A DNA stretch of 61,372 nucleotides, filler included, from Trichosphaerium sp. ATCC 40318 (taxonomy: Eukaryota; Protista; Tubulinea), in the NCBI GenBank assembly GCA_038496445.1. It is 3 parts of 3 records of this genome, joined end to end, with 100 filler letters (N's around TTAATTAATTAA, not from the genome) between each part and the next. Parts side by side here need not be neighbours in the genome. Positions count along the whole stretch, not along the records: positions 18,798 to 37,396 come from JALMLS010000264.1; 2 more parts are not named here. One strand, given 5' to 3'. Shown one piece after another: positions 18,798 to 37,396 of this stretch. The notes beneath the pieces were generated by a model. It saw only the letters and a list, made by a program, of their open reading frames with translations, was not told where the DNA came from and did no database searches. The stretch's first letter is position 1. Each line of letters opens with the position of its first letter. A program made the translations under genes and the position numbers.

Positions 18798-19414
18798 TTC
18801 ATCTGCTTAAAGGTGTTCATCATCGACCTACTCTGACTAGAGTGACTGATGAATGCTTAAAAGCTTTGGGGGTGTTCACACTATTATACTGAGGTGCACA
18901 AAAATAACAGATGATGGCATTCATGCGCTCAAACTTGTTCACACAATTGGCCTTTCAAATACAAGTGTAACAGGTGACTGTTTCTCTTCTTTGGCTTGTC
19001 CACACTATTGCTATTTCGAGTTGCCCTATTGCTACTGGTGTACAGAACTCAAAGGTGTTCATTCAATCTGCTTAGCTGAAAAAAACCATCACAAACAAGG
19101 ATCTATGCGCTCTTGCTGGTGTACATACCATTCACCTTACTGCCACATCAGTGACAGATGAAGGTATAAAAGCGCTTGCTGGAGTTCATTCTGCTACTCT
19201 TATTAATACATCAGTGACAGATGAAGGCATCAAAGCGCTTAAAGGTGTACATTGGATTAACCTCAGTGGTTGTACACAGATAACAGATTATGGCATCAAA
19301 GCATTAAAAGGAGTACAGGCAATTACCCTCAGTAACACACCAGTAAAAGATGAAGTCATTAAAGCGTTGAAAGGAGTTCATACAATTATCCTTAATCACT
19401 TCAGTGACATATGA
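18798..19414 (+). pseudogene. Frameshifted LRR gene fragment of the GVHTI.L...VTDEGIKAL family
   Basis: The same repeat as the F-box-LRR genes at 52994 and 55985, split across frames. Confidence 0.8.
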
Positions 19415-19505
19415 CGGTATTCAAGCGCTAGCTGGAGTACACCAACAAACCATAAAGCTAGCATTGCAACAATTATAATTTTTTTCGTATTTTACAAGAT
19501 TTTTG

Positions 19506-20946
19506 CTAGTGCCATATTGAATCTGTGTCAGTAGAACTTTTTACGTATGGTACAGAAGGATTTTCTTCCCTCCAGTTTTCAGTCGTAGACGAGTAGTATG
19601 TTGTAATAACCATATTTTCTAAGGTGCAAAAGTTACATGCTTGTAGTTAACAATTTAGGTTTTTGCTACATGATATTATTGTATTCGTACTTGGTTTGCA
19701 GCAACTGAAAACGTTTGAACCATACATAAACAAGAACGTATTAAATATTGGGAATAGGATATGTGGTATTGATTCAAGCACTTCAAGAACAAACGGCTAA
19801 AAAAGTGTATGAGTTTCGAGCGTGTTGAAAACCAGACGTTTTCTTTACATACTGTGTTTTCGTAATCAAGAAGCACGTAGACATATAACACTCCTGAGAA
19901 TACATAGCATAATAGAAACGCAAGAGGGTATCCAATAAGTTTTACAATAAGTGGTGCTAATAAATCCTTAGCACTGTTTACATTCATAGCTTTCTGGCAA
20001 AGAGGTTAATCGTGTAAACAAGCCAATAAAGATTGAACGTACTCTGAAGTTCACAACGAAAAATAGCTCGTATATTGACAATGCGTTGAGTACAGCAATA
20101 AATATGAATGAAATAAAGAACGGGAATACAGACACAAGCCCAAATAATCTATCGAGTTAATGACAGCGAGATATTGGTACAAACGTACAACTTATCTAAA
20201 AGAGACTGACCCTTCATGAAGCACCTATTAACAGCTGTTACTAACACCTTTTGATATCGCGTCACTTACCCGCCCCAAGGCTCTCGACCATAAGTTCTTG
20301 TAGCAAAAGGTGCCAGAGCCATGACAAGAGGAAACACAAAAATGAAGAATAGTATAAAAGGCTCCGCAACCACAACTGTTTTCCTTGTGCAAAACAGTCA
20401 ACTTAAAAAAACACGTTTATATTTTGGCATGTGCGAGCACGTGATTTTATACAATAAAAAAAAAGTACACGTGATTTTACATGTAAAAGGTTAAAAAAAA
20501 AGGATCACGTGATTTATGTACACCGATAGATAAGCGTACTTGTACTTGATACAGAAGAATATATTTACAGAAATTGCTGTGACGACGAAAAATACTGTCA
20601 AGTGAGTATAAACAGCGAAATAAGCTGCCAAGGAGCAAAACGGTTCTAAAGTGTCTTTAGCAAAACTTTCAGGCATTCAAGCAAGTATAAGTCTATAAGG
20701 TTGCTTGGTTTTGTGCGTACTAATAGTTTTTAGGGAGGATAGAGCGAATATTATTTCGCTAAGGCATAATACCCAATCTACAATCGATAAATACAATAGT
20801 AGACGCGTGGAAAAGTCTGTCATGTCTCTGTAGAAGAATAGAATCAAGAACATCCATGTTGCCAGTATTAAGGCTATGAGACCAACTACCACTGTAGAAA
20901 ATAGGAAAAACTGTTCTTCGCTGATAGCTACTAAGACTAACACCAT
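19506..20946 (-). CDS. 7TM GPCR, Dictyostelium cAMP-receptor-like (CAR/Crl) family, multi-exon
   Basis: TM2 RLLLYLSIVD, TM3 FCSLAAYF..AISVNIF, TM4 followed by YG..WG, and TM6 KLIGYPLAFLLCY. Confidence 0.75.
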
Positions 20947-21047
20947 ATTGATGGGGCAACCTCAGCCGCAGAAATTTATTTTCATGAATTTTTTTCGTGG
21001 TCAAACTTAGGTTCACAACCTTTTTGCGGATAGCGTGTGAGCACAGT

Positions 21048-23337
21048 ATGGGCAACTTCAAATCTAAAAAAAAGCCTCTAAATCAAAGACATCGTAAAGA
21101 TAATCAGAAACGTGTGCTACTCGTAGGTATGACAGTGGTAGCTATTTATAGATAGCTATACACAATTTTTGTTGGCTTTCGAAATAACATCAAAACTTAG
21201 GACCTAGCATGAGTGGTACTTGTTCAGAATCGTTTTAGAGTTAATGTGATTTACCGAAAACGTGTTTAGGGAAATCAAAGCTTCTGTTGCAGTTTAGACT
21301 CTTAAAAGAGGAAAAATTAACCCCTAGGGACCATCAGCATTACAATAACCTGGGTATATTATTTATACAGAGGTTCTTACGAGTTTTATCTGCACAACCT
21401 GAATTTTCAACTCTGGACAGCGTAAGATACATCTAAAGCACTAAATAGTAATATATGACATAAAATAGACGACACAAGATATGGTGAAGTCGTTTTTAGA
21501 TATGAATGATTACACATGGACACAACAACACATTGACGCTTTAAAACAGTATTAATATTTTTATTTTCTAAGTCAATCTCTTTGTGAACTAGGCTAGGTT
21601 GAAAGACAACGAAGAATTCATGAACATGATTTTGTATACTGACTTTAAATGTATCGTTTTATCCTGTAAGAAAAACATGAAAGCGTGAGTGGATTGTTAA
21701 CATTATGATACCTTTGTTTTAACTTTTTTTTTTCTAAGCTACATTGATTCAATTTGCTCTCAAACTGCAGATTCTTTCGTTGTGACTTATGAACAAAGGC
21801 TTAATTACCATATACATTCTGTCGGCATTTATGAGCTAGAAGGTGAACTTGATGGTACTGAATATAGATTGGGGGATGTTGGAGGTTTGTTTTTTAAAGT
21901 CTTTGTTTTCTTTTCTGCATATCAAATCCTTCTAGGAAGTCGTATGGAGAGAATACGGTGGATATATGTTTTAGATGGCGTGGATTATTTAATCTATTGT
22001 ATGTCTCTTGATAGGTGAGTGCATATTGTGTTATGTAATTGACCCTTCTCTCAAAAAAGTTACTTGTACTACGTTTGGGAAGATGATACAATTAATGCGT
22101 TTGATGAGTCATTGGAAATACTCAAAGGTCTAATACAAAGTTCAAATGTCAATGCTCCTATTGTCCTTGTATTAACAAAACTTGACTTGTTTGAGGAAGA
22201 GATACAAAACCATCCGGAAAAGTTTAGAGAGTTCTTCCCTGATTACAAAGGTACCAACCCGTTTACCCATGTAGCTTATACATATAATAGGAACAACAAT
22301 GAATACATATGATTGTGCCATGCACGTGTTCAATGTCATTTGTTCAAGACTAGATAACTCAGCATGTTTTCTTGGTGCTACTTTTACATCTTTGATAGAA
22401 AATCCTAACGCAATATCATGTGTTTTAAGGCTAACCTCAGGGAAAGGAGACGTCAGTAGTGACACAGGAAAAGAATTTTCACCATGTAAGTATAATATTA
22501 AACCTTTCATAAATACACTAATCATGCCATAGTATCATCCATCCAGCCTTTAATGTTTCCAAGAAAAACATCAACACTGTTACTTGATGTTGCAAAATTA
22601 AGCCAAGAAATATATGCCAACATGAATGCAGATAATGCCTTTATTTGTTCCATACGCAAATACGGAGCTTGTAAACATAAATCCAAACTTCTAACATCCC
22701 TCAAAAAGCTGTACAAATCAGAGACTCAAGACTTTGATATTAATACTGGCAAAGATTGTATTAAATGTCACAAGGTTAATCCTTACCTAATTTTTTGCTT
22801 CTACTTATGCAATTCAACTAGGCGATATTGATGTGCCGAGCTACATTTTTTGAAGGAGCTATTCTTTCTAATAATCTTGGGACGAATGGTGACGAAAATA
22901 CAAGCATTAGCTTAGAAGAAGATGTGTTCATTATCAAAACTTTTATCCACTTTGCATACCTTGATGACATACCTCCTAATCTTGATTTGGATACTCTATT
23001 AAAGCTCTTAAAATTCTCAGATAAGTATTGTATAGATTCCCTACAATCTGTTGTGATATTCTATGTTTTTAATCATAGTACACGTGATAAGACTACTACC
23101 AGCGACGAAGATTATTATCTTTCAAAAATGAGTGAATTTCTTGATTATGGATTATTGGGATGCAACTCGTTCATCATTAGCAATATAACTTCCTGGTTTC
23201 TCTGTCAGGAATCTAAAACGCTAAATAGGTTTCTTAACAAACACAAGGATACTATTGCAGTAAAACATCTCTTAGATCAAACTCTTCTGGTGCTACACGA
23301 CACTGATGAACCTTCAGCAAAGAACATACCCAAATAA
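21048..23337 (+). CDS. Divergent heterotrimeric G-alpha fused to a C-terminal BTB/POZ domain (multi-exon)
   Basis: MG start, G1 LLVGPSMSGKS, G3 DVGGSRMERIRW, VWEDDTINAFDESL and G4 VLTKLDLF. In-frame splicing continues to the BTB segment LKKLY..DFDI...IKCHKAILMCRATFFEG...FIHFAYLD...LLKFSDKYCIDSL. Confidence 0.85.
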
Positions 23338-23551
23338 GCGTACTGACAATAAAGCACACACACAGTAATTAAATTATTCGTAATGCAGCAGTACGCCAAG
23401 CTAAGGTGTATACTAAAAAGAGGCAACATGGTTTTTTTTTGGACATTTTTCTGTTGTCTACCAAGTTCCTAAATACACTTGAGAGGCTGAACGGGTGCTC
23501 TGCTTGGCTCTAGGAGTGGTTGTTTTGCGCTGTAAGCTTCTAACAATCAAA

Positions 23552-23623
23552 GCCTGTGTAGCTCAATGGCAGAGCAATGGCCTTCGAAGCCAGAGGTTGC
23601 GGGTTCGATCCCCGTCATAGGCT
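23552..23623 (+). tRNA. tRNA-Arg(UCG)
   Basis: Acceptor stem GCCTGTG/CATAGGC, D arm GCTC...GAGC, anticodon loop CT-TCG-AA and T loop GGTTCGATCC. Confidence 0.93.
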
Positions 23624-23930
23624 ATATTTCTTTTATTGCAAACCATAAAAGTGTGCTAAGTTGAACGGCTTCTACACTAGCAAGAATTGGGAGCTGTTGG
23701 TAATCGCAGAGGCAGAAAGGCAACTTTTTTATTTTTTACAAAACAGACGTCTGTCAAACTTTGTAAGTGTACTGAACTTTCGAGGTTTTAGGTATTATTT
23801 AATGTGGCCGTCTTTGGCCGTTGTTGGTAGAACTTAGTTGACCAATACGGCAAAAACTAAAAACACGTGTAGAGCCATTTGTTTAATCACCTTGCAGGTC
23901 TACCAACCTCAATAAAATACAGCATACCAA

Positions 23931-25385
23931 ATGGGTAATTCTACACAAACGTTTACGGGAGACAAAATAAATGCGAACGGTACTACATATATAGAGGCAA
24001 ATGAATTAAAGCATACTGGCGTATTTAAAGATAACATCTTCAATGGCAAGGGAGAGAAGATAGAGCCGGATGGAACAAAGTACATTGGCGAATTTAAAAA
24101 TTACAATTGCGATGGCAAGGGAGAATATACAGAGCCAAATGGATTAAAGTATGTCGGTGAATTTAAAGATAACAAGTTTCATGGCAAAGGTGAATACACA
24201 CAACCAGATGGACCAAGTTATGTTGGTAAATTTAAGAACAACAAACTTATCAGCGGAGAGAAAACATGGTCAGACGGGACGAAATATATACACATACAAG
24301 AAGACAACAACACTAGCTCTGGATGTGTTTATTTTCTTGATGGTACATTATGGAACCTCCAAATAGAAAAAAAAAGATTATCAAGGATTGCAAACTAACA
24401 CTTCCCTACAATAAAACAACAGAAGCTAAATGGATAGAAGAGGAAAACAAACTGATAACAGTTTTTGACGAGTACAAAGTGACCTTCAACCGATTCACAC
24501 GCCAGATTCCCAAAAAGGTATATGTTGGCAAAAATAAATCAGTGTTGCCATCAAATTGGACATGTGATCAAGTGTTACATGTTCTCTACGGGATTGAGCC
24601 AAAGATTGTTGATGTATTGAAGCAAAAACAATTAAGGTACAACCCAATACAATGATTTTTACTTTATTTACTTATAAAAAGTGGACAAGAGTTTTTGAAA
24701 CTAGACATGGAAACACTATCACAGTTTAAAGTACCTTCGGAATACAAGACAAAAATTCTAGAATACATCAAGGACTTGAAGCTAGGAACGAACTAAAAGT
24801 ACATGTAATTTTATGTTATATTTTAGACTTCAAGATAGGTAAGCTGGAACCAATACAGCCATCGGAATTAAAATCAAACCCAAACAACTTCTTGTCAAAA
24901 GCCTTGGTTGATCCGGAACATGAATATAAAAAATTTGGAGACACAGTCGAAGATATCAATATTGTTCAAGATGTTGTGGAGGAACTTAAAAGGCAACATG
25001 AAGAAAACAAGTTTATGAATTCACAGTTGTCACAAAAATCATGGATCAATAAACCAGACTTTTCAGTTGTCAATGTCTTGGTGCGCTTATTCTCCTACTT
25101 ATTTTGTGCTAAAACGTTCAATAGCCACTTTCTACTCTACCAGAGCACAATGACGAACCCATTGATCCTGCTCAGATACCAACAATACCTGAATCAGGAA
25201 TCGATTGGCATTTAGCACTGGTAAAAAGGGGCTTTTCAAGTGACAGAGCTCAACAGATTGGGTCTTTGATGAATGAAGCAGGGGTACAGCTTGCTGATAT
25301 TGACATATGTTTGTTAAAAGAACTTGGATTCACTGCATTAGAACGTGTTAAAGTAATCAAAGCCAAGCGAGAAAACAAAATATAA
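23931..25385 (+). CDS. MORN-repeat protein with SAM-like domain(s); apparent frameshift in the A-run near 24370
   Basis: Repeats of Y.GEFK...F.GKG.Y..P.G. The SAM-like segment reads PSNWTCDQV...LSGQEFLKLDMETLSQFKVP...KILEYIKDLK. Confidence 0.7.
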
Positions 25386-25785
25386 CTATCTATGGCAAAC
25401 AAATTAATAAAAGTAATGATAATGCTGCTCTTTAAATAGCACTTACAACTTCTCCAAACCCACAAATTTTATTTTAAGGTCTTTCGTTGCACCTTTTTCT
25501 ATCACTCATGTCCAATGGCACCAACAGACTATGTACTATTGATTTTTATTTTTTCACATTAGAATCTTACTATACAACTTTTTACTTGAGTATGTATCAG
25601 TCGCTTTCGTCAGAGATCTGACCCGCATAACTAATAACAACAGAAAAATTATAGGAACTTGAGCGTTATCATCTAATAATCCTTCTGTTTGAGCTGCAAG
25701 CTTGATACTTTAGACGTAGATTTTGATATCTATTTTGCCTTGATGTCAATTTCGATCCTTCCGATAAGGTGAGAAAAAAATACCT

Positions 25786-28700
25786 TTAGCCGAAAGGACG
25801 AAGGAGACAAAAAAGAGTTGTAAAATCTTGTGGATGGAGAAGCTCGAAAGAAGGTATATTGACTTCACAAAACAAATGACAATAAATGTATGTGGTGCAA
25901 ATAAACTTGCTTCGTTTTATAGAACAGTTGACCCAGGCATGTTCTTACTGATGCCTCTGCTATTTAGATGTTTCGAGCAAAGTATAGCTCCTCGTTGAGC
26001 CATGCGTACAGGTGATGGAATCGAAATAGGATCTAACGAAGAAAATAAGACAAAAAGTTGAAATACAAATTGATATGTGTTGTACTGTTCATGTTAAAGT
26101 ATAGCAAACAGAGGCCATATGTTAGCTGTACGATAACGTTTTGATCAAACTGAGCAATAGTAGTATCAAATAAAGTCTCATAGCGTGTTGGACGAGCCAA
26201 CTGCTTGGTGTCTTTAACCTACAAAAAAATTAAATTAGGCTTAGAAGCATCAAAACTCAAATAATAGCCGTACAGTTTTCCCAACGTGAGATTGTAGAAT
26301 AAATCCACGTTGTGGCCAATGTGTTATAGGTGCGACTAAGTTATCACTGTCTTCGCTGTCCGCTTCTTGATTTACCATAGCGTGAGGATCACCATCACTA
26401 TGTGTTATATTTTCAGAATATATACCCTCTTCAACTGCACGAAGAGATGCTTCTGGTGTAGTTTTCTCAACAAACAATGCATTTCGTATTTTGACCAAGT
26501 GAGTGTCTATTAGAGTGCCTGGTTCGAGGTTATCAACATTAGTTCCTAAAGAAGTACATAAGTATTTGTTACAACTGAAATTGAAGAAAAACGAAACTTA
26601 TTGTTTTTCACTCACCTCTTTGTGTAACTGCCATGATACGTGTTTTGATACGTGCAATGACGCAAATATACTGCATTGTTATAACTTGGTTTCCATTGGC
26701 AGTCACATTGTAAGTCTAGGAATCAAAGTGAATGATACAAGAAGAATCGAGAACACGCTTTACCTTTACCAGATTGGCAATACTATTAATTTCAGCATCT
26801 CTGCCTCTCACGCCTCCTTCACTATTTTTATTAGTGGGAACATGTGTGTATTATTATAGAAGCATACCGGTATATTATAAGGTATTTTGGATAACCTCCA
26901 GTAGCAGCTTTATGACCTAAGACAGCTTAACATTTCAAAAAAAATAGTGTTTTAATTTCATGCGTTCAAAGGCATTCTCAAACCATTCCTAAAGGTAAAA
27001 GGTATTAGCTAACTTGAGCGGATAAGCAATACATACCAATGAAACGTTTCCATCTGCTGCGGATGTGACTTGTTTAGAGTATACAACCTCACTTGGGTAT
27101 CCGCTGTCCCAACTTCCATACATCGTAAACCTAAAAGATAAGTGAGTTTTTCTGAACATTCGAACACCACGCACATGCATAACCACCGTTTACCGCCTGT
27201 ACTTGAACCAGCGATCCCGCATATTATCATACTAGATAAGAACTTGCTTTTGATACTAGGATGACCCCAGTCCGTTATCTTCCAAGGTAATCCACCCAAC
27301 TTTCTTACAACCTAGATAACAATTATCAATGGAGATTTGTTTAACGAAAAAGCGCCTCAGACGTGCCTGAATACATAACTTTTGTAGAGCTATATGGTTA
27401 AAGAGTACACTAAAAGGAACGATATATGAGCAAGAAAACTTTGATATAACAAAACCATGTGAAAGAAAATAGTACCTTGCATGAACACATTGAGAGACAA
27501 CATTGTAATGGTCAAGTTTTTCCTTTATGACTCTATAGAGGTGATCGTTATCACCTTTTCTACCAGAAAAAATAACGAGAACAAATCTGTATTTGGCCCC
27601 GCTGTCAAGCTCTTTGTTCAACTTGCCTTCTAATCTAAAAAAGATATCTAATTAGTATCTTTTTTGTCAAACTTTTTCTCTTACTCATTATTTTTAAACA
27701 CAACCACTTTAGTTTGGTCGTTAGCTATCATTCCATACTCTTTCATTTTTTTAAAAAAGCTATTCTCACTATTTTTAGCACGACTAGTGACAAAAACAAT
27801 CCAAGGATCTCTATAGTCCAATCCCCTCGAAACGGTGTTTTGATCCCAATGAGTTGTTTTGGGATCTACTCTTTTTGAATTACGTGGCGCCATCTCTAGC
27901 CTAGATACAAACATTATTGTTGTTGGTATAAATATGTGAACAATTTTAAGTAAAACGCACGTGATTGGGTTAATATAAACACCGTCAAACTGTACAGGAG
28001 CATCCTCAATGGTAAAGTTCCATTCATTGAGATCTCCTCCCTTTGATTCCCGCAACATATTTGCATTGTTTTTTATGACATCATATCTGTGACGTGCATC
28101 AATCTTTGTAAAACTATCCATTTCTTTTATATCCTGTGGACTAACACTCCAATTAGGTACAAAAGCAACACTATTCCCATTGACCATTAGCACGTACCTT
28201 AGGTTACCAATGATAGTGCATAATTGAGGTAGGTACCTCGTACTCTTGTCATTCTTTCTAGCTGGACTGCAAAAAAAGGTGAGAAAGAAGGAAGTGACCA
28301 TTGGTGTATTTTACGCACACTATCAATGGTTGAGTAACATCAATTTTTATTTTATATGTATTATAGTAGTACTCTTCAAAGGTAAGTGAGTTCTCATCCT
28401 CACTGTCAATTCTGAGTTCGTTCAATGGTATACGCTTGTGAAAGTCCAAGGATCTGTAAATCGAGAAGGTAAGTATGATAAGGCAAAGGTAAGAAAACAC
28501 GTACTCTGCAAAAAAAGATACTCTACGCTTGCCGTAGTTTGTCACCATTTGCTTATGAGAAATGAAGTCCCTCAATTTTCTGTTGTGAGGAAGGTCATCA
28601 ACCTTACCTATTGTATACAGTTAGCTTAAACATGTGGAAGTACAAGTACTAACCATATTCTTTGATTGTGTCCCACACAGTCTCTACAGGTAAGAAGTAA

Positions 28701-29899
28701 GTAACGTCACCTAGAGACAAGCAAAAAAAAAAACTCACGTGTTTTAAGACACTTGTAGATATTGTCAATAAATATTAAATCTACATCAGCGCAAACAAAA
28801 CCACGCCCGCGGTAAGGTGCTGTTGCACCTTCATAAATATCCATGTATCTCATTTTTTTCACTGGATTTTCCCTCAATTGGTCACGTCCTAATCTCAATG
28901 GAAATTTTTTGCCAAGCAGCTTAAACAAGAACAGTATTAGAACCTTATCTGCTCGTTAACTATGAATAAACGTACCATTCTCAGTATTGAGTTGATGATG
29001 TGGCTCCTAGCTGCAGCATTCGTATTAACATCAACTGTAGCTTGAACTCTAGGAAATAGTCTCTTTTTCCTGGGACACCTTTCAGTTGCGCATCTATAAA
29101 ATGAATGAGTAGAGGACATGTTAATGTAAAAAAAATGAAAGCAAAGTAAAGTAGTACAGCGTGACCCCTCTTAAAAGCAAATGTGGCTGATAAACGTACT
29201 TGGCAAGGTTGCATCTTCCTTTAGAAGATACAAGTTTCTACCACCCATTATCCAACTACAAGATAACTAAATACACAATATCTAACACTTGCTAATACGC
29301 ACGGGGTATTTGGTATATTGTTATTGATCCATACTGAAACCAAGATTGAGAGTAGTCTCATCGAATAGATCATAGGCTAAAAAAACGTGTTCATCAAAAA
29401 TGGATTAAACGATAACACGTGCGTACCTGTATTTCGATAGAATACATCTGTATTGCACATTTGGGCTTGATATGCACCTTGAATGCATTTGACACTAGCC
29501 ACACAGTTTTTTTTGGCTCACATTTATACAAAAACGACTTTTTTACTTCGTCTTCATCAACGTCATAATCTGAGTCGTAGTATGTATACTACATACAAGT
29601 AAGCAGAGAAAGACATTGTGTTCATTCGTACCTCCGGCTCATATCTTATTCGGTCATATTTACCTTTAAAAAAAAAGTACATGACATAAGGTGATGACTT
29701 AAAACTGTGGTTGAAAGAACACAAACGTACCATCCAAATCGAGAGGCGGCATTTGGTTTCTTCCAGGCCTTGGTCCTCGCCAACTGCCTCTACCACCTCT
29801 ACCACCTCGGCCGCCTCTGCCGCTTCTGGCACCTCTATCACCCCCGCCTCTCTCTGGAGCTCTTCCTCGTGGGGGGTAGGGTTCGAACCTACGTGCCAT
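25786..29899 (-). CDS. Piwi-like Argonaute with an RGG-rich N-terminus and substituted catalytic residues (multi-exon)
   Basis: RGG tail, PAZ (TFEEYYYNTYKIKI...QPLI...YLPQLC), MID (YRVIK...VVSQCV...RKLGGLPW) and PIWI (ARPTRYETL, QLTYGLCLLYFN, SIPSPVRMA). The last exon is inferred; an alternative stop lies at 25917. Confidence 0.92.
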
Positions 29900-30376
29900 A
29901 CTAATACGTTTTAGTGAGAAAAAACCGTTGGGAACAAGTTCACAAATTCGTACGTACGACTACCTTTTTGCTGTACACTTATTCCTGAACCTGTTTACCG
30001 TTGACTCTATCGCAAACAGTGAGTAGTACCTTTTAGCATTATGTCCAACGTACCTTCTTGTAGTGTGTTTCGCTCTAATACTGAGGTTTTGGAGACCGCT
30101 AGTAACAAGTTGTGTCACTAAAATAAACGGTTTTTGTTTACATAAGTCACTGTTAAGTTAAGGAGTACGTAACTTGTATTATACACTTCATAACAAGCTT
30201 CTGAGAGTCTAAACTAAAAAACGTGTTTCTTGAATTTGGAACCTGGAAGATTGTACTTGCTTTTTTTTTTGTTTATCATTTATTATTATTCTACAAAGTT
30301 GCTTTGTACATGAGAATTGGAAAATTTGCTTATTCAAGCAAGCAACAAGAACAAAATCCTCATGTTTTTTTTTGGT

Positions 30377-33300
30377 TTAATTGTATTTTTGCATAAACTC
30401 ATAGAAAGAGAATTCACCTGGAGCTAACCCGTAAGCATATACATACCGACTAGCTAAGTGAGCACTAAGTAGTGCAGCAATATAAGCTTCTGGTACACGC
30501 TCAACAACCTTATCAAGTCCAATAAGGTCAAGAAGAAGTTTTGGAATAGCTTCTTCAAGAACCTTTTGTTTTGTCTTAGGATTACTCCAAAGGGAAGACT
30601 CTGTTATTGTCTGGTTCAATGCATTAATCTTTGCTGATACAGCATCAGATAGTACACACATTGGGCGACCAGATATTTGGTGCTCATTCCAGATACACTC
30701 GCTAAAAGAACAAGTAAGAAAACAATCCGATTTTTTTGAAGGAAAAAAACAAAGAAAGAAGAAGAGGTCTTTTTGCTTTTCGGTTTGTGTTGAAAGTTAC
30801 TCGTACAATTCATCTCTGGCATTATCCTCAATACGTTTTTGTGTTTCTTTGACATAATCACCATAAAATTTAGGAGCGACACCATCCTTAACACACATAT
30901 GCTAGAGCAAAAGGTTAATACTTTTACTTTGAAAAACCAAAAAAAAACATACTTCTTTATGCTCTTCATCAATTAGCGCAAGCGCTGCCAATACTTCCAT
31001 TGAAGAAGATGTAACACCACCCTTATTCGCAGATGCATCCTTCAATACTGGAATACCTTGTTCTTCAATCTTAAGTCTAGCTTCTTGAGTCAAGAACAAG
31101 TTGGCGCCCTCAACAATATTACTAAAGAGAGGCTTTCCATTGTTTCCAGTCAACACCTTAACAACATACGTCAGTACACCCTCAAAATGAGTGACTTTGT
31201 AACGTACCTTGGAGACATTGTTGATGTTAATGGATTCAGGTCTACCGCCACAAGGAACGAAAAAGTCGCAAGCAGCGTATTTTGTCAAATGGAAGGTATT
31301 CCTCAAGGTCATACCGCTATGAACCTTTGTACCATCTGGTAGGGTAACATCCTTATCAGCAAGGAGTACAAGGAAACCATCTAGATGAATAAAGGTAAGA
31401 TAAAGGAGAAAACAATAAAAAAAAAGAGAACGAGGCTCTTTTTGACTTGCAAATTCTTCTCAAACAAGTTGTTCGTTTACGCTTTGTACGCACCTTTTGT
31501 TAGCTTGCTTCTGTCAAAGTGGTCAACCATTTGTCTAGCTTTAGCTAATCTAACGATTTCTTCCTTGTTGATACCTTGTGGATCATACAAGACACCAGCA
31601 CCATCAATGATGACTTTAGTCTTATCTTCTGATAACAAAATCTCATTTGAACCAAGATCTCCATCAGGTCCGCCTGTTTGTACTTTAAGTTGATCTTGTG
31701 CCTTAATACCCTTTTTGCGCATAATACCAAGAACATATTGACGGACAGAGCGTGTAGTCATACCTGTACAAGACAATATTAGAATTAAATAATTTTTTCG
31801 TTTTTTGATAAAAAAGTGACGACAGCGTCAACATACCGTATCTGTCATGTGGAATACCGCCAAGAGATTCTGATTTACCAGTGGTAAAGGCAGTCCAGTA
31901 TCTGTATCCTCGTGATTTAGCATGAAGAGCAGCCCAGTCCATGAGATCTAAATCAAAGTTGTCAGTTATAAAATCTTAAGAGACTTCTAGGATTTTTTTG
32001 GAACGCACCGGCTGTTCCTTCATCAGGTCCACAAAATACGTATTCGATTTTATCGTAGTGATTAACAATATCCTCATCACCATCACTCTCAGCGAGCAAG
32101 ATATCAAGTATACTATCAATATACTTACGGAAAGCAACAGTAGCCTTGTCTTGGTGTGCCATTGACAACAGAATTGTACCTACAGATCAGTTAAGTCATA
32201 GAACAGCTTAAATTGGGTTGAAAAGAAAAAAAACAACGAGTGTAGCTTACCCTTTGAACCACCTTCTGGGATATCCTTATTCTTTTTAAACTGAGTTAAT
32301 GCGAGATTGTAGTTCTCATCAAATACTTTCTCTACATTTCTCAAGAATTGATGCTCATTTCTAGATTTGATCATACGAATACCACCACGAGCAATATCAG
32401 AGAATCTAATATGGAATCCTCTGAATTCTGCACCAATAAATTGGAATACAGCATAAGGAACCTCTGGGTAGTCATTCTCAAGGAAACTTGGTTCGAATCG
32501 AAGCTTTTAAAGAGATTAGAGGTTGATTCTGTAGATTTTTGTAGATTGGCGTACCGAGAGTGCGGCTTTGTTTCTCTTGTAGAAATTCGTGATTTGTAAG
32601 TGAGAGTTGAGGGTTAGGAAAGCCTAACAGAAGAAATTAGAGAAAGTAGATACACATGCACTACGCACAGTCAAGATTTCTCTGTCTAGAACATCACCGA
32701 CTTCACGATTAATTTTAGTGCAGATCTCGTCATTCCAAACAGGTTTTGGAGGTGTTTCACCGTTTGCGCGTGGCTTAAAGTGGTGCTCGAAATCAGCGTA
32801 TAGTTCTTTAATCAGACCAACGTTGTTGAAGATAGCTTGTTTGCAACGACTCTACAAGTTCAGTTAATACCTCGTAGTTTAAAACAACTTATTCTATGTT
32901 ACCTCAGTTGCTGCTTCACTTCTGATACGCTTACGAAGGCGAATCAAGCGATCTTTGTATGTAGGTTTATCACTTAACTCATCCCAAAGCAACTTAAACT
33001 CATCAGATTGTTTGTTTAAGAAATGGTACGAGAATTTCCATCCGGCATAGGCGTATACGACCTTAAATAGTAGTTAGTTTAGTTGCTTTGTCTGTGAGGA
33101 ATAAGGGCATACCTCTTCAGGTTGTAGTTGACCACCTTCTAATAGAGGGAAGAGGGATGTCCTCGGTAGAATGAACAAGAAGTTGACTTGAGTCATAAAG
33201 TTATCAACAGCAGGAAGAGAGCTCTCATCTTCACACTCAATGTAAAGCATGTATACGGAGATATCATTAGAGAAGTTCTCAACAAACTTTGACCTTGCTG

Positions 33301-36300
33301 TAAGCCCGTTAAGCTCCAAAAGAATGGAGACAGAGGAGAATAAACTAAAATAACAGTTAATACACGTAGTGAAAGTTTTAAATAACAGTATACGCTTACC
33401 TGTGAGTGAAACCAGCTGGGAATGCAATGGTGACTGGTACAGTTCCTTTGTGAAGATTTACCTCTTCAATATTGGATCTGGTCACAACAGGACACATCTT
33501 TCCAATAGCCTCTTTGATAACATCTTCATATGTCTTTTGAGAGTCTGTTCCTTTATCACGAAGGAAAGCGCCAGTTGCAACACGTTTAAGAGAAGTTTCA
33601 CCTTCCTCAACTTCTACACAGTAAAAGTAAGAATAAAATAGACAGCACGGTAGGCGTACTTGGATTCAAATAAGCGTGTTTTTCTACAATGTAAAGTCCA
33701 ACACGAGGGCTTGTTGGTGCGCCATCAATAGTTGCCTCAGAGAGGAAGAAGCGCTAATAACAAAGGATAAGTATCACTTCTTTTGAAGATGTAATCAAAA
33801 AAACTACAAGAATACGTACAACTGAAGGTGCTAGTCCGTTTGTTGGCTTAGCAGACTTGACGTAACCAGTACCAAGATATTTAATCTCAATCTGTCTTTC
33901 AATAGTTTTACTGTGTGTAGTAGTAATGTAAAGAGCATGGTTAGCTTCTTCTCGAGCGTATCTAAACGTGAAAAATGAATAAAACGATGATTAATCGAAG
34001 AAAAATGGATTTAACTTCAAGTTCTCTCTTCCTCGTACCTAATGTTTCCACCAGTCAATTTAGCATATTGCTTAGCAGTAATCAATGCAACAACATGATT
34101 AGCAATAGTATGAGGTGAGTTGATAACGAAATAGTATGCTGGGAAACCAAGTTTGTTGAAAAAATAATTGACTTCCTTCTCAGTGACGACTTCACTGTAG
34201 GACCTAATCAAGGACATTAAAGACAACTCTTTGGTGTCAACTATACAACATACCCTAGGCGTAATACGAGATTGTATACAATCTTCATTTGATCGGAGTG
34301 ACCAGAGCCAACTAAACAACTTGTTAGCCATCCGAACTTTTCAAAAAAAAAAAAACGTAAATGAAGAATTCTTGCTTGTACTTACAACTGACAGTTGAAT
34401 CACTTGAGCTTAGTAGAGTAGATGTGATAGTATGATTAGCAAGAGCTCTAATTTTTCCAACAATCTACGTACAACGTCAACAATGGAAAAACGAAATCAT
34501 TTTGTACCTCAGTTTGTGCAGTACGAGGTTTCAAATCTCTGAGCTCTAATACAGCGAGAATACGATCTCCGTAACGGATTGGAACGCATAGTAGGTTCTC
34601 GAATTTAACAATGATACCAACAGAAGCATCTTTGCATTCCTCCAAAGTGTACTAAACAAAAAATGAGTCACAAAAAAAAGATTGTATACATTACAAAAAA
34701 CAACGTACACGTTCAATATCTTTTTGTTCAGATATCCAGACAGCTTCAGGTTTATCTACGCTGAAACCAACAGCTCCTTTACCATATGGTAGTGTTGTGG
34801 CGAGTTTAGAGTGGTACTAAAAAAGATATTAACATCAAACAAGTCCAAACAAACAAAATTAAAGAAGTTTTACGCTAAATAGTTATTTTTCAAACTCTGT
34901 CGTTATTTAAGTGTTCAAAATACGATTAATCGGTATAACGAACCTCTGCTAACGCGTTCAAGTCATCAGAAAGTGCATACCATAACCCAGGGCATCTTAA
35001 ATTTTTGTCTTTCTCGTTTGTGATCCACACAGCACCTACAGGGTGTAAAGATATCGAAAAAAATGATGAAAATATTATTGGAGTGTTTTAAAGAAAATTC
35101 AAAAGGAAAACAACTCCGAGTTTTATTTTTCCTTCTCACGTACCATAAGAAAACTTCATATCATCGCAGATAGTCACAATAAGCTCTTGTAAACTAGCCC
35201 AAAACTTTGGTGTACCCTAACCACTAGTTTAAGAACAACATACGGAGAAACTTCTAATCCAAAAAAAAAAAATTACCTTTATTGTGTCGATATTCTTGGT
35301 CTGTAGAGATCCACTGCGAGATATGAGATCCTTAACAGTGTTATGTTGTCCTCTATTGGCATCTTGTAGAGGTGTATTACCCCACCTAAAAACTTCTTAA
35401 CTCACAAGTTCGGAAAAAAAGGCCAACTTTTTGTAGTTTTATGTTTTTCGAAAAACAACTTTATTACGCTAAAACCAAAAAAGAATTTTTGTTTTCGAAA
35501 TATAACTTTAGCACTCGAGTGCTTAATTTAGTGTACATACCTATCAACAACGTTTACAAACGCTCCATTTTGAATTAAATGATCTACAACCTCTGTTTGA
35601 CCAGTTAAGGCTGCGCGATGCATAGCTAGAGCATTTTAGACAACAAATTAGGAAGGAGCTAAATGTACTAGCTATTTTTCCGTACCTGTGCGACTATCGT
35701 AATCGAATGCATTTACGTCTACACCACTCTTAATGAGGCGTGATACAGCCTCCAAGTCTCCTTCTCTCGCTGCCTCAAAAAACTCGGGTTGCTGAAAAAG
35801 GTAAACACAAGTGTATGTCGCCATTAACACTATGAAGCGTTCTAAGGCGTATTTCAAGCCGTACCAGAGATTTTAGAGTGTTTTTGTTGGCTCCTTTACT
35901 AACTAGATAACGTGCAACCGCAACGTGCTTGTGACGAGTAGCATCGCTTAGTGGAGTACCGCCCCACCTGAACTTACATCAGCAAAGTGAGGTGAACCAA
36001 AATTTAACGTTACAGTTTTTGTAGTTTAAGAAAACGTCAATAACAGTGCTACGTACCTATCTTCGGCGTTTACGTCGGTTTTGACGGTTTCAACTAAAAA
36101 CTTTACTGTTTCGATGTGCCCTTCCGCAGATGCAAGATGGAGAGGTGTGCGCAAGTCGTAATCGGGTTTACTTAGGTCCCAGCTTTTCGCGTGGTAACCC
36201 TAAAAAGGGGTGTTGAAAAACATAACTCATACTAACTGTTTTATACCTTTAACTCTTCAAGCGCTCCTTTGGATGCTGCTAAGATTACTTTGAATGCGTC

Positions 36301-36360
36301 AGCGTCAAGAGAAGCCAAGATCATTGGCATAGACGGCTTTTTAGCAAGTTCAGATGTCAT
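30377..36360 (-). CDS. Large NAD-specific glutamate dehydrogenase (GDH2 type) with N-terminal ankyrin repeats and a GAF-like domain (multi-exon)
   Basis: GDH motifs KNKDIPEGGSKG, GPDEGTA, AFTTGKS..GGIPHD, QTGGPDGDLGSNEI, PCGGRPE, IVEGANLF and DASANKGGVTSSS. Ankyrins DYDLRTPLHLASAEGH and DRWGGTPL. GAF-like LPYGKGAVG...LLCVPIRYGDRILAVLEL. Confidence 0.9.
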
Positions 36361-37396
36361 TTTTTATGTATTATGACTGTAATTGCCGTCTCTGTAGAAA
36401 TTTATGTATCTGGCTGGGGAAGCGCAAAATGAATTCTCGTGACTTTGCAAGTTTGGGGTGAATTTGGGTCGTGATAACACGAATGTCGCAATTTTTCGAA
36501 AAGGCGTATTTGCGCGTGCTCGTTCCTTTACATACGCGTTTTCGCTACTCCGAGCGGTTTGAACATCATATGATGTTCAATAATGTGCTGTGACCTCCAT
36601 TTACATTTTATAATGTTCTGTAAGCAAGCTCAAAACACCGAACAGCAAAAATGATGCTTTTGCTAACGAAATTCTTGCTGCCAAACCGTGAACTGTTCTG
36701 TTAAATGAAGTATAGGATTACTACACGCGCTAGTAGCACATTGGTGGGTTGAAACCATAACTTTGGTCCTTCTGTAACCGTATCAAGTACACTGTACACT
36801 TCCTGCGTAGTTTGATGAAGTAGAGAATACTTTAAGAGCTGTGGTTGTTATTTGAGAGTGTTAGAATTTTGATTTTGGGAACAGAAAGTAGTTTTTTCAA
36901 CTTAACGCACTCACAACCTTGCCTTAACGCCCCAGGACGCTGTTCTTGCTTTGTATCCGGTAATTCAGACAGCGGTACAAAAGACCGCGAACTTTGGGAA
37001 CGTACTACCCTTCTGTGGTACATGCAGTCAAAAATAAAAAGCATTACTTGCCTGTCATAATCCGCTTGTACCTGACGCCTGTTCAAGTGGCTGGCGTGTA
37101 CTACAAAGTGTAAACAAAAAGGTTAGTTCAACTACCTTTTGGGATTCCCAATGTATTGGTCTAGGCATCGCGTACAGTAGCAAAGCACTTCCAACTTGTT
37201 GAACTTGATATTTTTCATAATGCCGCTCGAAAGATGGGTTAGAGTCGAAATGACTTTGATACACTGTCCTTTTTAAGGTTTGCATTTTAGTCTTTTTTTA
37301 AGGTCGTTATAACATTGTAGTGATACTACAGAATCATCTCTTCGTCGTGACATAGTTCAATAGTTTAAACCAAAAAAAGCTTGAAAAGATCACGGT

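Follow-up and report, generated by a model that had tools for sequence, protein, structure and literature searches.

In a 61,372-nucleotide (nt) stretch of DNA from the tubulinean protist Trichosphaerium sp. ATCC 40318 (assembly GCA_038496445.1), all of which is referred to here as the window, a gene on the plus strand at 21048-23337 probably encodes a single protein in which a G-alpha-like domain impaired in hydrolysis of guanosine triphosphate (GTP) is joined to a BTB domain, and we regard this as the best explanation of the locus overall. The gene was modelled, with borders set by landmarks, as 11 exons carrying a reading frame of 593 amino acids (aa). Its start and stop positions agree with those given in an earlier sequence-only reading, which had proposed a G-alpha-BTB fusion lacking both catalytic residues of the GTPase, either GTP-locked or a pseudo-G-alpha, held at the membrane by a myristoylation-type start and acting as a ubiquitin-ligase adaptor that links G-protein-coupled receptor (GPCR) signalling to degradation. 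Every motif quoted in that reading (the P-loop, switch I, switch II, G4 and the MG start) was found in its place, and all of them fall in one spliced frame.

The G-alpha-type domain and its catalytic residues

Forward three-frame translation of 20800-23600 gave small coding blocks with brief AT-rich intervals between them, and the model that joins these blocks has a coding length of 1782 nt (593 codons and a TAA). All ten introns have GT-AG borders, with lengths in order of 74, 54, 47, 49, 54, 51, 45, 40, 47 and 47 nt and a G+C content of 29.5% compared with 35.1% in the exons, and if any single one of them is kept a stop follows after 1-44 codons. The Pfam, PDB, protein-language-model atlas and protein collection searches described below were run exon by exon, and the joined protein was used in local alignments only (tblastn, phmmer and hidden Markov model, HMM).

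The identity of the first half of the protein is carried mainly by exons 6 to 8. The Pfam G-alpha profile (PF00503) matched exon 6 (21739-21884; end of the helical domain, switch I, beta2-beta3 and DVG(G)) ungapped over profile positions 145-191 (E 0.08, 12.5 bits), exon 7 (21936-22014; switch II, (G)SRMERIRWIYVLDGVDYLIYCMSLD) over positions 194-216 (E 0.0038, 16.9 bits) and exon 8 (22060-22250; switch III, alpha3 and G4) over positions 222-280 (E 5.9e-12, 45.8 bits). Single exons were all below the cut-off of 48.8 bits, but the three matches are collinear and do not overlap, and their rough per-exon sum is 75 bits. In searches of PDB sequences exon 7 gave a residue-for-residue alignment to Galpha-i1 R205-L227, and the best match of exon 8 was yeast Gpa1 (9sh6_E, E 2.5e-6), in which LTKLDLFEE falls on LNKIDLFEE; Gi was also aligned at the NKxD region. 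Exon 6 alone had chance matches or none against the PDB sequences. Order and spacing of the motifs are G-alpha-like as well, with GPSMSGKS at aa 27, DVGG at aa 184 and TKLD at aa 252, and the distance from P-loop to switch I of about 130 aa is that of Galpha-i1. The approximately 125 intervening aa have the size of a helical domain and are encoded by exon 3 (21270-21421; GKS of the P-loop, alpha1 and helical-domain start), exon 4 (21469-21548; assigned to the helical-domain region by position only) and exon 5 (21598-21684; helical-domain region), none of which has a family or PDB match alone.

The ends of this domain are less canonical. Exon 1 (21048-21126) encodes MGNFKSKKKPLNQRHRKDNQKRVLLV and supplies the first base of Gly27; it opens with MGNFKS at 21048, which has the Gly2 and Ser6 of the N-myristoylation consensus and lacks a Cys3 for palmitate, and continues as a polybasic stretch, so that the myristoylation-type start is indeed kept. 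The whole segment ahead of the P-loop is strongly basic and 26 aa long, compared with about 39 aa in Galpha-i1, corresponding to an N-terminal helix shorter by about 13 residues. Intron 1 splits, in phase 1, the Gly codon ahead of the P-loop, presumably at the same place as an intron of vertebrate GNAI genes, and is followed by a 15-nt microexon, exon 2 (21201-21215), which lies between introns of 74 and 54 nt and encodes (G)PSMS(G), the middle of the P-loop. In a regular-expression search of the model, GxxxxGKS, the spacing of Walker A, turned up only when this microexon was included. At the other end, exon 9 (22291-22485), where alpha4-beta6-G5-alpha5 would be expected, holds a short helix-like stretch and then a Gly/Ser-rich linker; motifs here were placed by eye, among them FTSL (22383-22394) in place of the expected FTCA. 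A free alpha5 C-terminus, which in canonical G-alpha enters activated receptors, is absent as such, the chain running on to a linker and the BTB domain.

Within this framework three residues needed for hydrolysis are, as aligned, replaced, namely Gly42 by Ser, Arg178 by His and Gln204 by Ser in Galpha-i1 numbering. Switch II reads DVGG|S across intron 6 (21875-21940), and the alignment of exon 7 puts Ser188 (21938-21940) at the Gln204 position. Switch I reads HIHSVGI (21809-21829), with His162 at the Arg178 position and Ser165 at that of the Mg-binding Thr181; this numbering follows the ungapped Pfam match of exon 6 as anchored by exon 7 and assumes that Galpha-i1 has no insertion or deletion relative to the profile there. 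In the P-loop, GPSMSGKS (aa 27-34, split over exons 1, 2 and 3), Ser29 occupies the position of Galpha-i1 Gly42 and Ras Gly12, at which substitution of the Gly impairs hydrolysis. The changes in switch II and switch I had both been called in the sequence-only reading and are upheld by alignment, and the P-loop change, which had gone unflagged, is added to them. G4 is TKLD (22175-22186), replacing NKxD; Rac1 likewise has TKLD at G4. Kept are Lys33 and Ser34 of the P-loop, Asp184 and Gly187 of DxxG, Lys253 and Asp255 of TKLD, and the switch II/III framework, with equivalents of Arg205, Glu207, Arg208, Trp211 and Gly217 and of Glu245 in a 'DES' motif. A canonical G-alpha with a mis-spliced switch II was rejected, since an in-frame Gln is offered neither by a CAA or CAG codon nor by a different GT-AG pair. 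Because the residues that contact phosphate, Mg and guanine are kept and the catalytic ones are lost, a domain that binds nucleotide and hydrolyses it poorly fits better than one that cannot bind, and impaired hydrolysis with nucleotide binding retained is the likely condition predicted from these residues.

The BTB domain and its transcripts

The second half of the protein begins in exon 10 (22533-22774), which encodes a linker (about 55 aa) that matched no family and then, from about 22703, the first 24 or so aa of the BTB domain. Intron 10 (22775-22821, 47 nt) lies within the domain, and exon 11 (22822-23337) encodes the rest of it (to about 23052), a tail of about 94 aa predicted to be helical, and the TAA at 23335-23337. 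A possible polyadenylation signal, AATAAA at 23348-23353, is found 11 nt past the stop codon. A phmmer search with exon 11 (171 aa) covered 1.84 billion proteins, in which each 50% cluster from a total of about 15 billion is represented once. It had a single match at E<=0.001, a protein (P0001) with E 4.2e-4, which belongs to the BTB proteins (5e-24 for Pfam BTB) and matches the SPOP/BPM BACK weakly. When a BTB family profile (A1) was built from 21 relatives of P0001, hhalign aligned residues 2-86 of exon 11 to it with 90.9% probability and E 1.1e-6. Named matches of exon 11 in the atlas were all BTB clusters, the top one, with a score of 0.94, being auto-named RhoBTB1-like.

Two alignments of the joined sequence cross the junction between exons 10 and 11. 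That with the A1 HMM extends over aa 399-499, and phmmer of the joined C-terminal half with P0001 runs through the splice site, with KDCIKCHK|AILMCRATFFEG against REEIKANKFMLMARSPVFAG. As intron 10 divides the domain, the Pfam BTB profile (PF00651) had no match on the separate exons. By these alignments the BTB domain is divergent but complete, interrupted by intron 10, and it is the single such domain found in the model. AlphaFold on the single sequence of exon 11 gave a predicted local distance difference test (pLDDT) value of 55.6 and meaningless Foldseek matches; with the BTB alignment pLDDT was 66 overall and 81-91 over residues 31-90, with a low-confidence helical tail. Foldseek on this second model ranked BTB/Skp1 folds first with none significant, in a comparison that is circular since the alignment was made of BTB proteins.

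Only one public run (X1) contains part of the stretch, its contigs covering 22634-23352 and ending at 23352. Two of the contigs lack precisely the 47 nt of intron 10, bounded by GT..AG, which marks the material as derived from RNA and shows the BTB exons to be expressed and spliced in agreement with the model. Another contig enters intron 10 by 8 nt and then diverges. The contigs fall in a near-identical class (about 99%) and a diverged class (90-95%), which points to alleles or to paralogous copies of the BTB part within the sample. Among the differences listed, the diverged copies have 9 synonymous and 20 non-synonymous changes, one in-frame insertion of ATT after 23110 and no stops, and they are fast-evolving but open; the 9:20 ratio is not different from random (p 0.13).

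The junction on which the fusion depends is intron 9 (22486-22532), which has a GTAAGT donor, CACTAATC near its 3' end, a CTAAT-type branch motif and a TAG acceptor, and which at 47 nt has the length of introns 3 and 10. If it is kept, the frame meets a stop at 22530-22532, 20 nt ahead of the next ATG, at 22553. A separate BTB gene is unlikely because this 20-nt gap after the retention stop leaves no room for a promoter. On the logic of frame and splice sites, the fused G-alpha-BTB architecture is highly probable. The proposal in the sequence-only reading that splicing continues in frame into a complete BTB domain thus stands as regards frame, splice sites and removal of intron 10, and lacks reads at the G-alpha/BTB junction; across the interval in which that reading would have had a transcript checked, 22250-22830, the public contigs begin at 22634, so that intron 10 is seen to be spliced and the region upstream is uncovered.

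Weighing the probable fusion against its alternatives

Several results weigh against a hydrolysis-impaired G-alpha fused to a functional BTB adaptor. Searched singly, exons 3-5 (alpha1 and the helical domain) had no G-alpha match in Pfam, exon 3 found nothing beyond chance in PDB, and exon 9 had no G-alpha match in Pfam, PDB or the atlas, where recognition was below threshold. P0001 was the only match of exon 11 in the protein collection, from which the window's own protein and any close relatives are thus absent; a word search of protein collections with exon 8 found no relative, metagenome contigs scanned with exons 11 and 8 gave pattern matches of which none was confirmed as a relative, and a tblastn search with the model found no paralogue elsewhere in its piece of the window (18798-37396). 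There were no contigs of the public run over the G-alpha exons or intron 9, coverage gaps being uninformative by themselves. Constraint on the BTB part is weak, given the 20 non-synonymous and 9 synonymous changes in the diverged copies. Finally, the column of the phi-x-E motif, the Cullin-3 (Cul3) contact motif in which the Glu contacts Cul3, holds N-L-G in the alignment with P0001 or L-G-T in that with the A1 HMM, where relatives have M-V-E or M-x-E, and the tail had no 3-box or BACK family match in exon-wise Pfam searches.

The alternative that survives best accepts the fusion and denies the adaptor: the BTB domain would serve for self-association or partner binding only, making the protein a dimeric membrane scaffold with no part for Cul3. 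We consider this possible, if somewhat doubtful. The lost Glu of the contact motif, set against the M-x-E of the related BTB family, and a tail with no BACK or 3-box match are what such a scaffold would have, and many BTB domains are not Cul3 adaptors. It would be less expected of a scaffold that the nearest BTB relatives, by sequence and by profile, are Cul3 adaptors of SPOP/BPM type, that the top atlas cluster is RhoBTB-like, and that a helical extension is predicted past the BTB domain, as in Cul3 adaptors, albeit at low confidence, with no BACK family match and nothing significant in Foldseek. The same observations bear on the proposal of the sequence-only reading that the protein recruits a Cul3 ligase, which holds only in part. 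Recruitment is possible because the nearest relatives are SPOP/BPM adaptors, and the case for it is weakened by the Gly or Thr that both alignments show in place of the Glu and by a tail that matched no 3-box, so that a role as Cul3 adaptor, argued by analogy, may be entertained but is tentative.

A second alternative is that the locus makes two products, a G-alpha-like protein whose end at 22530-22532 would come from keeping intron 9, or which is cut short by earlier polyadenylation, and a BTB protein starting at the ATG at 22553. An ATG-started open frame does begin there, the contigs are confined to 22634-23352 with none upstream, and the tail of exon 9 is so little like a G-alpha that a natural end there is conceivable. 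Coverage of only the 3' end is, however, to be expected of a small (13 Mb) data set of complementary DNA (cDNA) type, just 20 nt separate the retention stop from the ATG, and in intron 9 the donor is of consensus type, a CTAAT resembles a branch site, the acceptor is TAG and the length is the commonest among the introns of the gene. We regard two products as unlikely.

It is also unlikely, to a similar degree, that the gene is a young and fast-drifting lineage-specific one, formed from a duplicated G-alpha and a captured pair of BTB exons, with little or no conserved function and perhaps decaying. Such a history would agree with the failure of exons 11 and 8 to find detectable relatives in the collections searched, with the random-like substitutions in the diverged copies and with the fact that half of the G-alpha exons are unrecognisable. 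It would agree less well with a frame intact through 11 exons and 593 codons, with nucleotide-binding motifs and a switch II framework that are kept, with diverged copies that are free of stops and have their sole indel in frame, or with the expression and splicing seen in the contigs of the BTB part. It is hardly credible that the open frame is due to chance or that a G-alpha gene and a BTB gene were joined by chimeric assembly, for although the window is stitched from pieces, the gene is well within one of them (18798-37396, from JALMLS010000264.1), independent contigs match 22634-23352, and ten successive in-phase GT-AG introns are not a chance product.

Proposed function, neighbouring genes and related systems

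The hydrolysis-impaired G-alpha-BTB protein would consist of a polybasic anchor of myristoylation type, a divergent domain of G-alpha type, a linker of about 70 aa and one BTB domain with a helical tail. From its residues the G-alpha part probably holds GTP and barely hydrolyses it, and the protein may therefore be better pictured as a membrane-bound interaction module that is permanently 'on' or independent of nucleotide than as a timed switch. The BTB domain would dimerise the protein and, by analogy with RhoBTB, may bridge it to a Cul3 ligase, in which case partners of the G-alpha-like domain would be ubiquitinated at the membrane.

The link to GPCRs that the sequence-only reading had drawn is doubtful. 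Exon 9 is unlike any G-alpha profile, structure or atlas cluster, and the C-terminus runs into the linker and BTB domain; because the alpha5 and C-terminal regions are altered and attached to the BTB part, receptor-driven exchange is unlikely, and so, judging by the predicted protein, is classical GPCR coupling. One observation in favour of a GPCR context is that a divergently transcribed seven-helix receptor-like gene has its ATG 101 nt from that of the G-alpha-BTB gene. This divergent neighbour (19691-20946, minus strand) was modelled manually with six GT-AG exons (20946-20721, 20654-20522, 20383-20270, 20148-20043, 19993-19853 and 19796-19691), continues 3' and encodes at least 275 aa, with seven hydrophobic stretches in order and about 16 aa ahead of the first. 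It looks like a receptor in these respects, and an exon-wise Pfam search of it gave no match. A self-contained receptor-to-ubiquitin module could be imagined, in which the G-alpha-BTB protein is recruited through its G-alpha-like domain to the adjoining receptor or to G-beta-gamma, its BTB domain brings the Cul3 ligase to the membrane and the output is degradation in place of a timed GTP cycle, as an independently arisen heterotrimeric counterpart of RhoBTB, but we think this quite improbable.

Downstream, a transfer RNA gene, tRNA-Arg(TCG), lies at 23551-23624, 214 nt past the stop codon and between two protein-coding genes. The next of these (23931-24398) has MORN repeats (Pfam E 2.7e-14) and a start of myristoylation type, MGNSTQ. 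Argonaute-like exons are found on the minus strand at 27256-28575, with a weak PAZ match (E 2.4e-4) and linker motifs that are Argonaute-like by eye, and a large gene for a Gdh2-type NAD-glutamate dehydrogenase occupies 30377-34331, also on the minus strand, with GDH2_N, GDH_2nd and ELFV_dehydrog matches. The best identity of the glutamate dehydrogenase exon to any collection protein is 59%, and its few named matches are chytrid and Entomophthora sequences, at about 51%. By this exon the organism has no close annotated relative in the collection, with a possible fungus-like affinity.

If the fusion is as predicted, the recruitment of GTPases into ubiquitin-ligase adaptors known from RhoBTB, ARF-BTB and ARF-F-box proteins would extend to the heterotrimeric branch, and the gene would provide a natural G-alpha with an output that GTP hydrolysis does not control and which, like the XLG proteins of plants, could help in separating nucleotide-dependent from nucleotide-independent functions of G-alpha. 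Its value is limited for now in that it is a single gene of a poorly sampled eukaryote with no orthologues known, and both the fusion and Cul3 binding are predictions. The combination of G-alpha and BTB had no description in the full-text literature searched; the G-alpha architectures surveyed in 2011 by Anantharaman et al. may include one.

Compared with Galpha-i1 and Gpa1, the protein shares the MG start, the spacing of the P-loop and of the other motifs, DVGG, the RxERxxW of switch II and xKxD, but it differs in the replacement of Gly42, Arg178 and Gln204, in TKLD for NKxD, in the shorter N-terminal helix and in an alpha5 that is unrecognisable and not free. Plant XLGs offer a second comparison, since in XLG2 a G-alpha-like domain that is without hydrolysis and nucleotide-binding residues keeps nucleotide-independent partner binding (bioRxiv 10.1101/795088; reviewed in PMC8584482). 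The XLGs, however, have a long N-terminal extension with a Cys-rich region and nuclear localization signal (NLS) and have no BTB domain, whereas here only 26 aa precede the P-loop and the extension is C-terminal; unlike in XLG2, the P-loop Lys and Ser and DxxG are kept. A BTB adaptor already ties G-beta-gamma to Cul3-dependent ubiquitination in the KCTD5, KCTD2 and KCTD17 ligases (PMC10348674), although there it is a separate polypeptide with a BTB domain of T1/KCTD type, while here the G-alpha-like part belongs to the same protein and the BTB domain is nearest to SPOP/BPM.

Comparable in architecture are several ARF-family proteins of protists that have independently gained BTB or F-box domains, which has been described as repeated recruitment to ubiquitin circuits (PMC8358228). 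The presumed ancestor of G-alpha is itself ARF-like. The ARF-family survey left out G-alpha proteins and contains no case of G-alpha with BTB (PMC8358228). In RhoBTB1-3 and Dictyostelium RacA a GTPase with substitutions at hydrolysis positions is N-terminal to BTB, and the top atlas cluster of exon 11 was itself named for RhoBTB1; RhoBTB binds Cul3 and delivers substrates to it (PMC10413933, PMC13437954). The differences are that RhoBTB has a Rho-type GTPase and two BTB domains, whereas the present protein has a G-alpha type of domain with a helical-domain-sized insertion, one BTB domain and an N-terminal lipid-anchor motif, and that the only sequence relationship seen is the shared BTB fold. 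The predicted protein is best labelled as RhoBTB-like by convergence, a new variation on the theme of GTPase joined to BTB that starts from a G-alpha with impaired hydrolysis.

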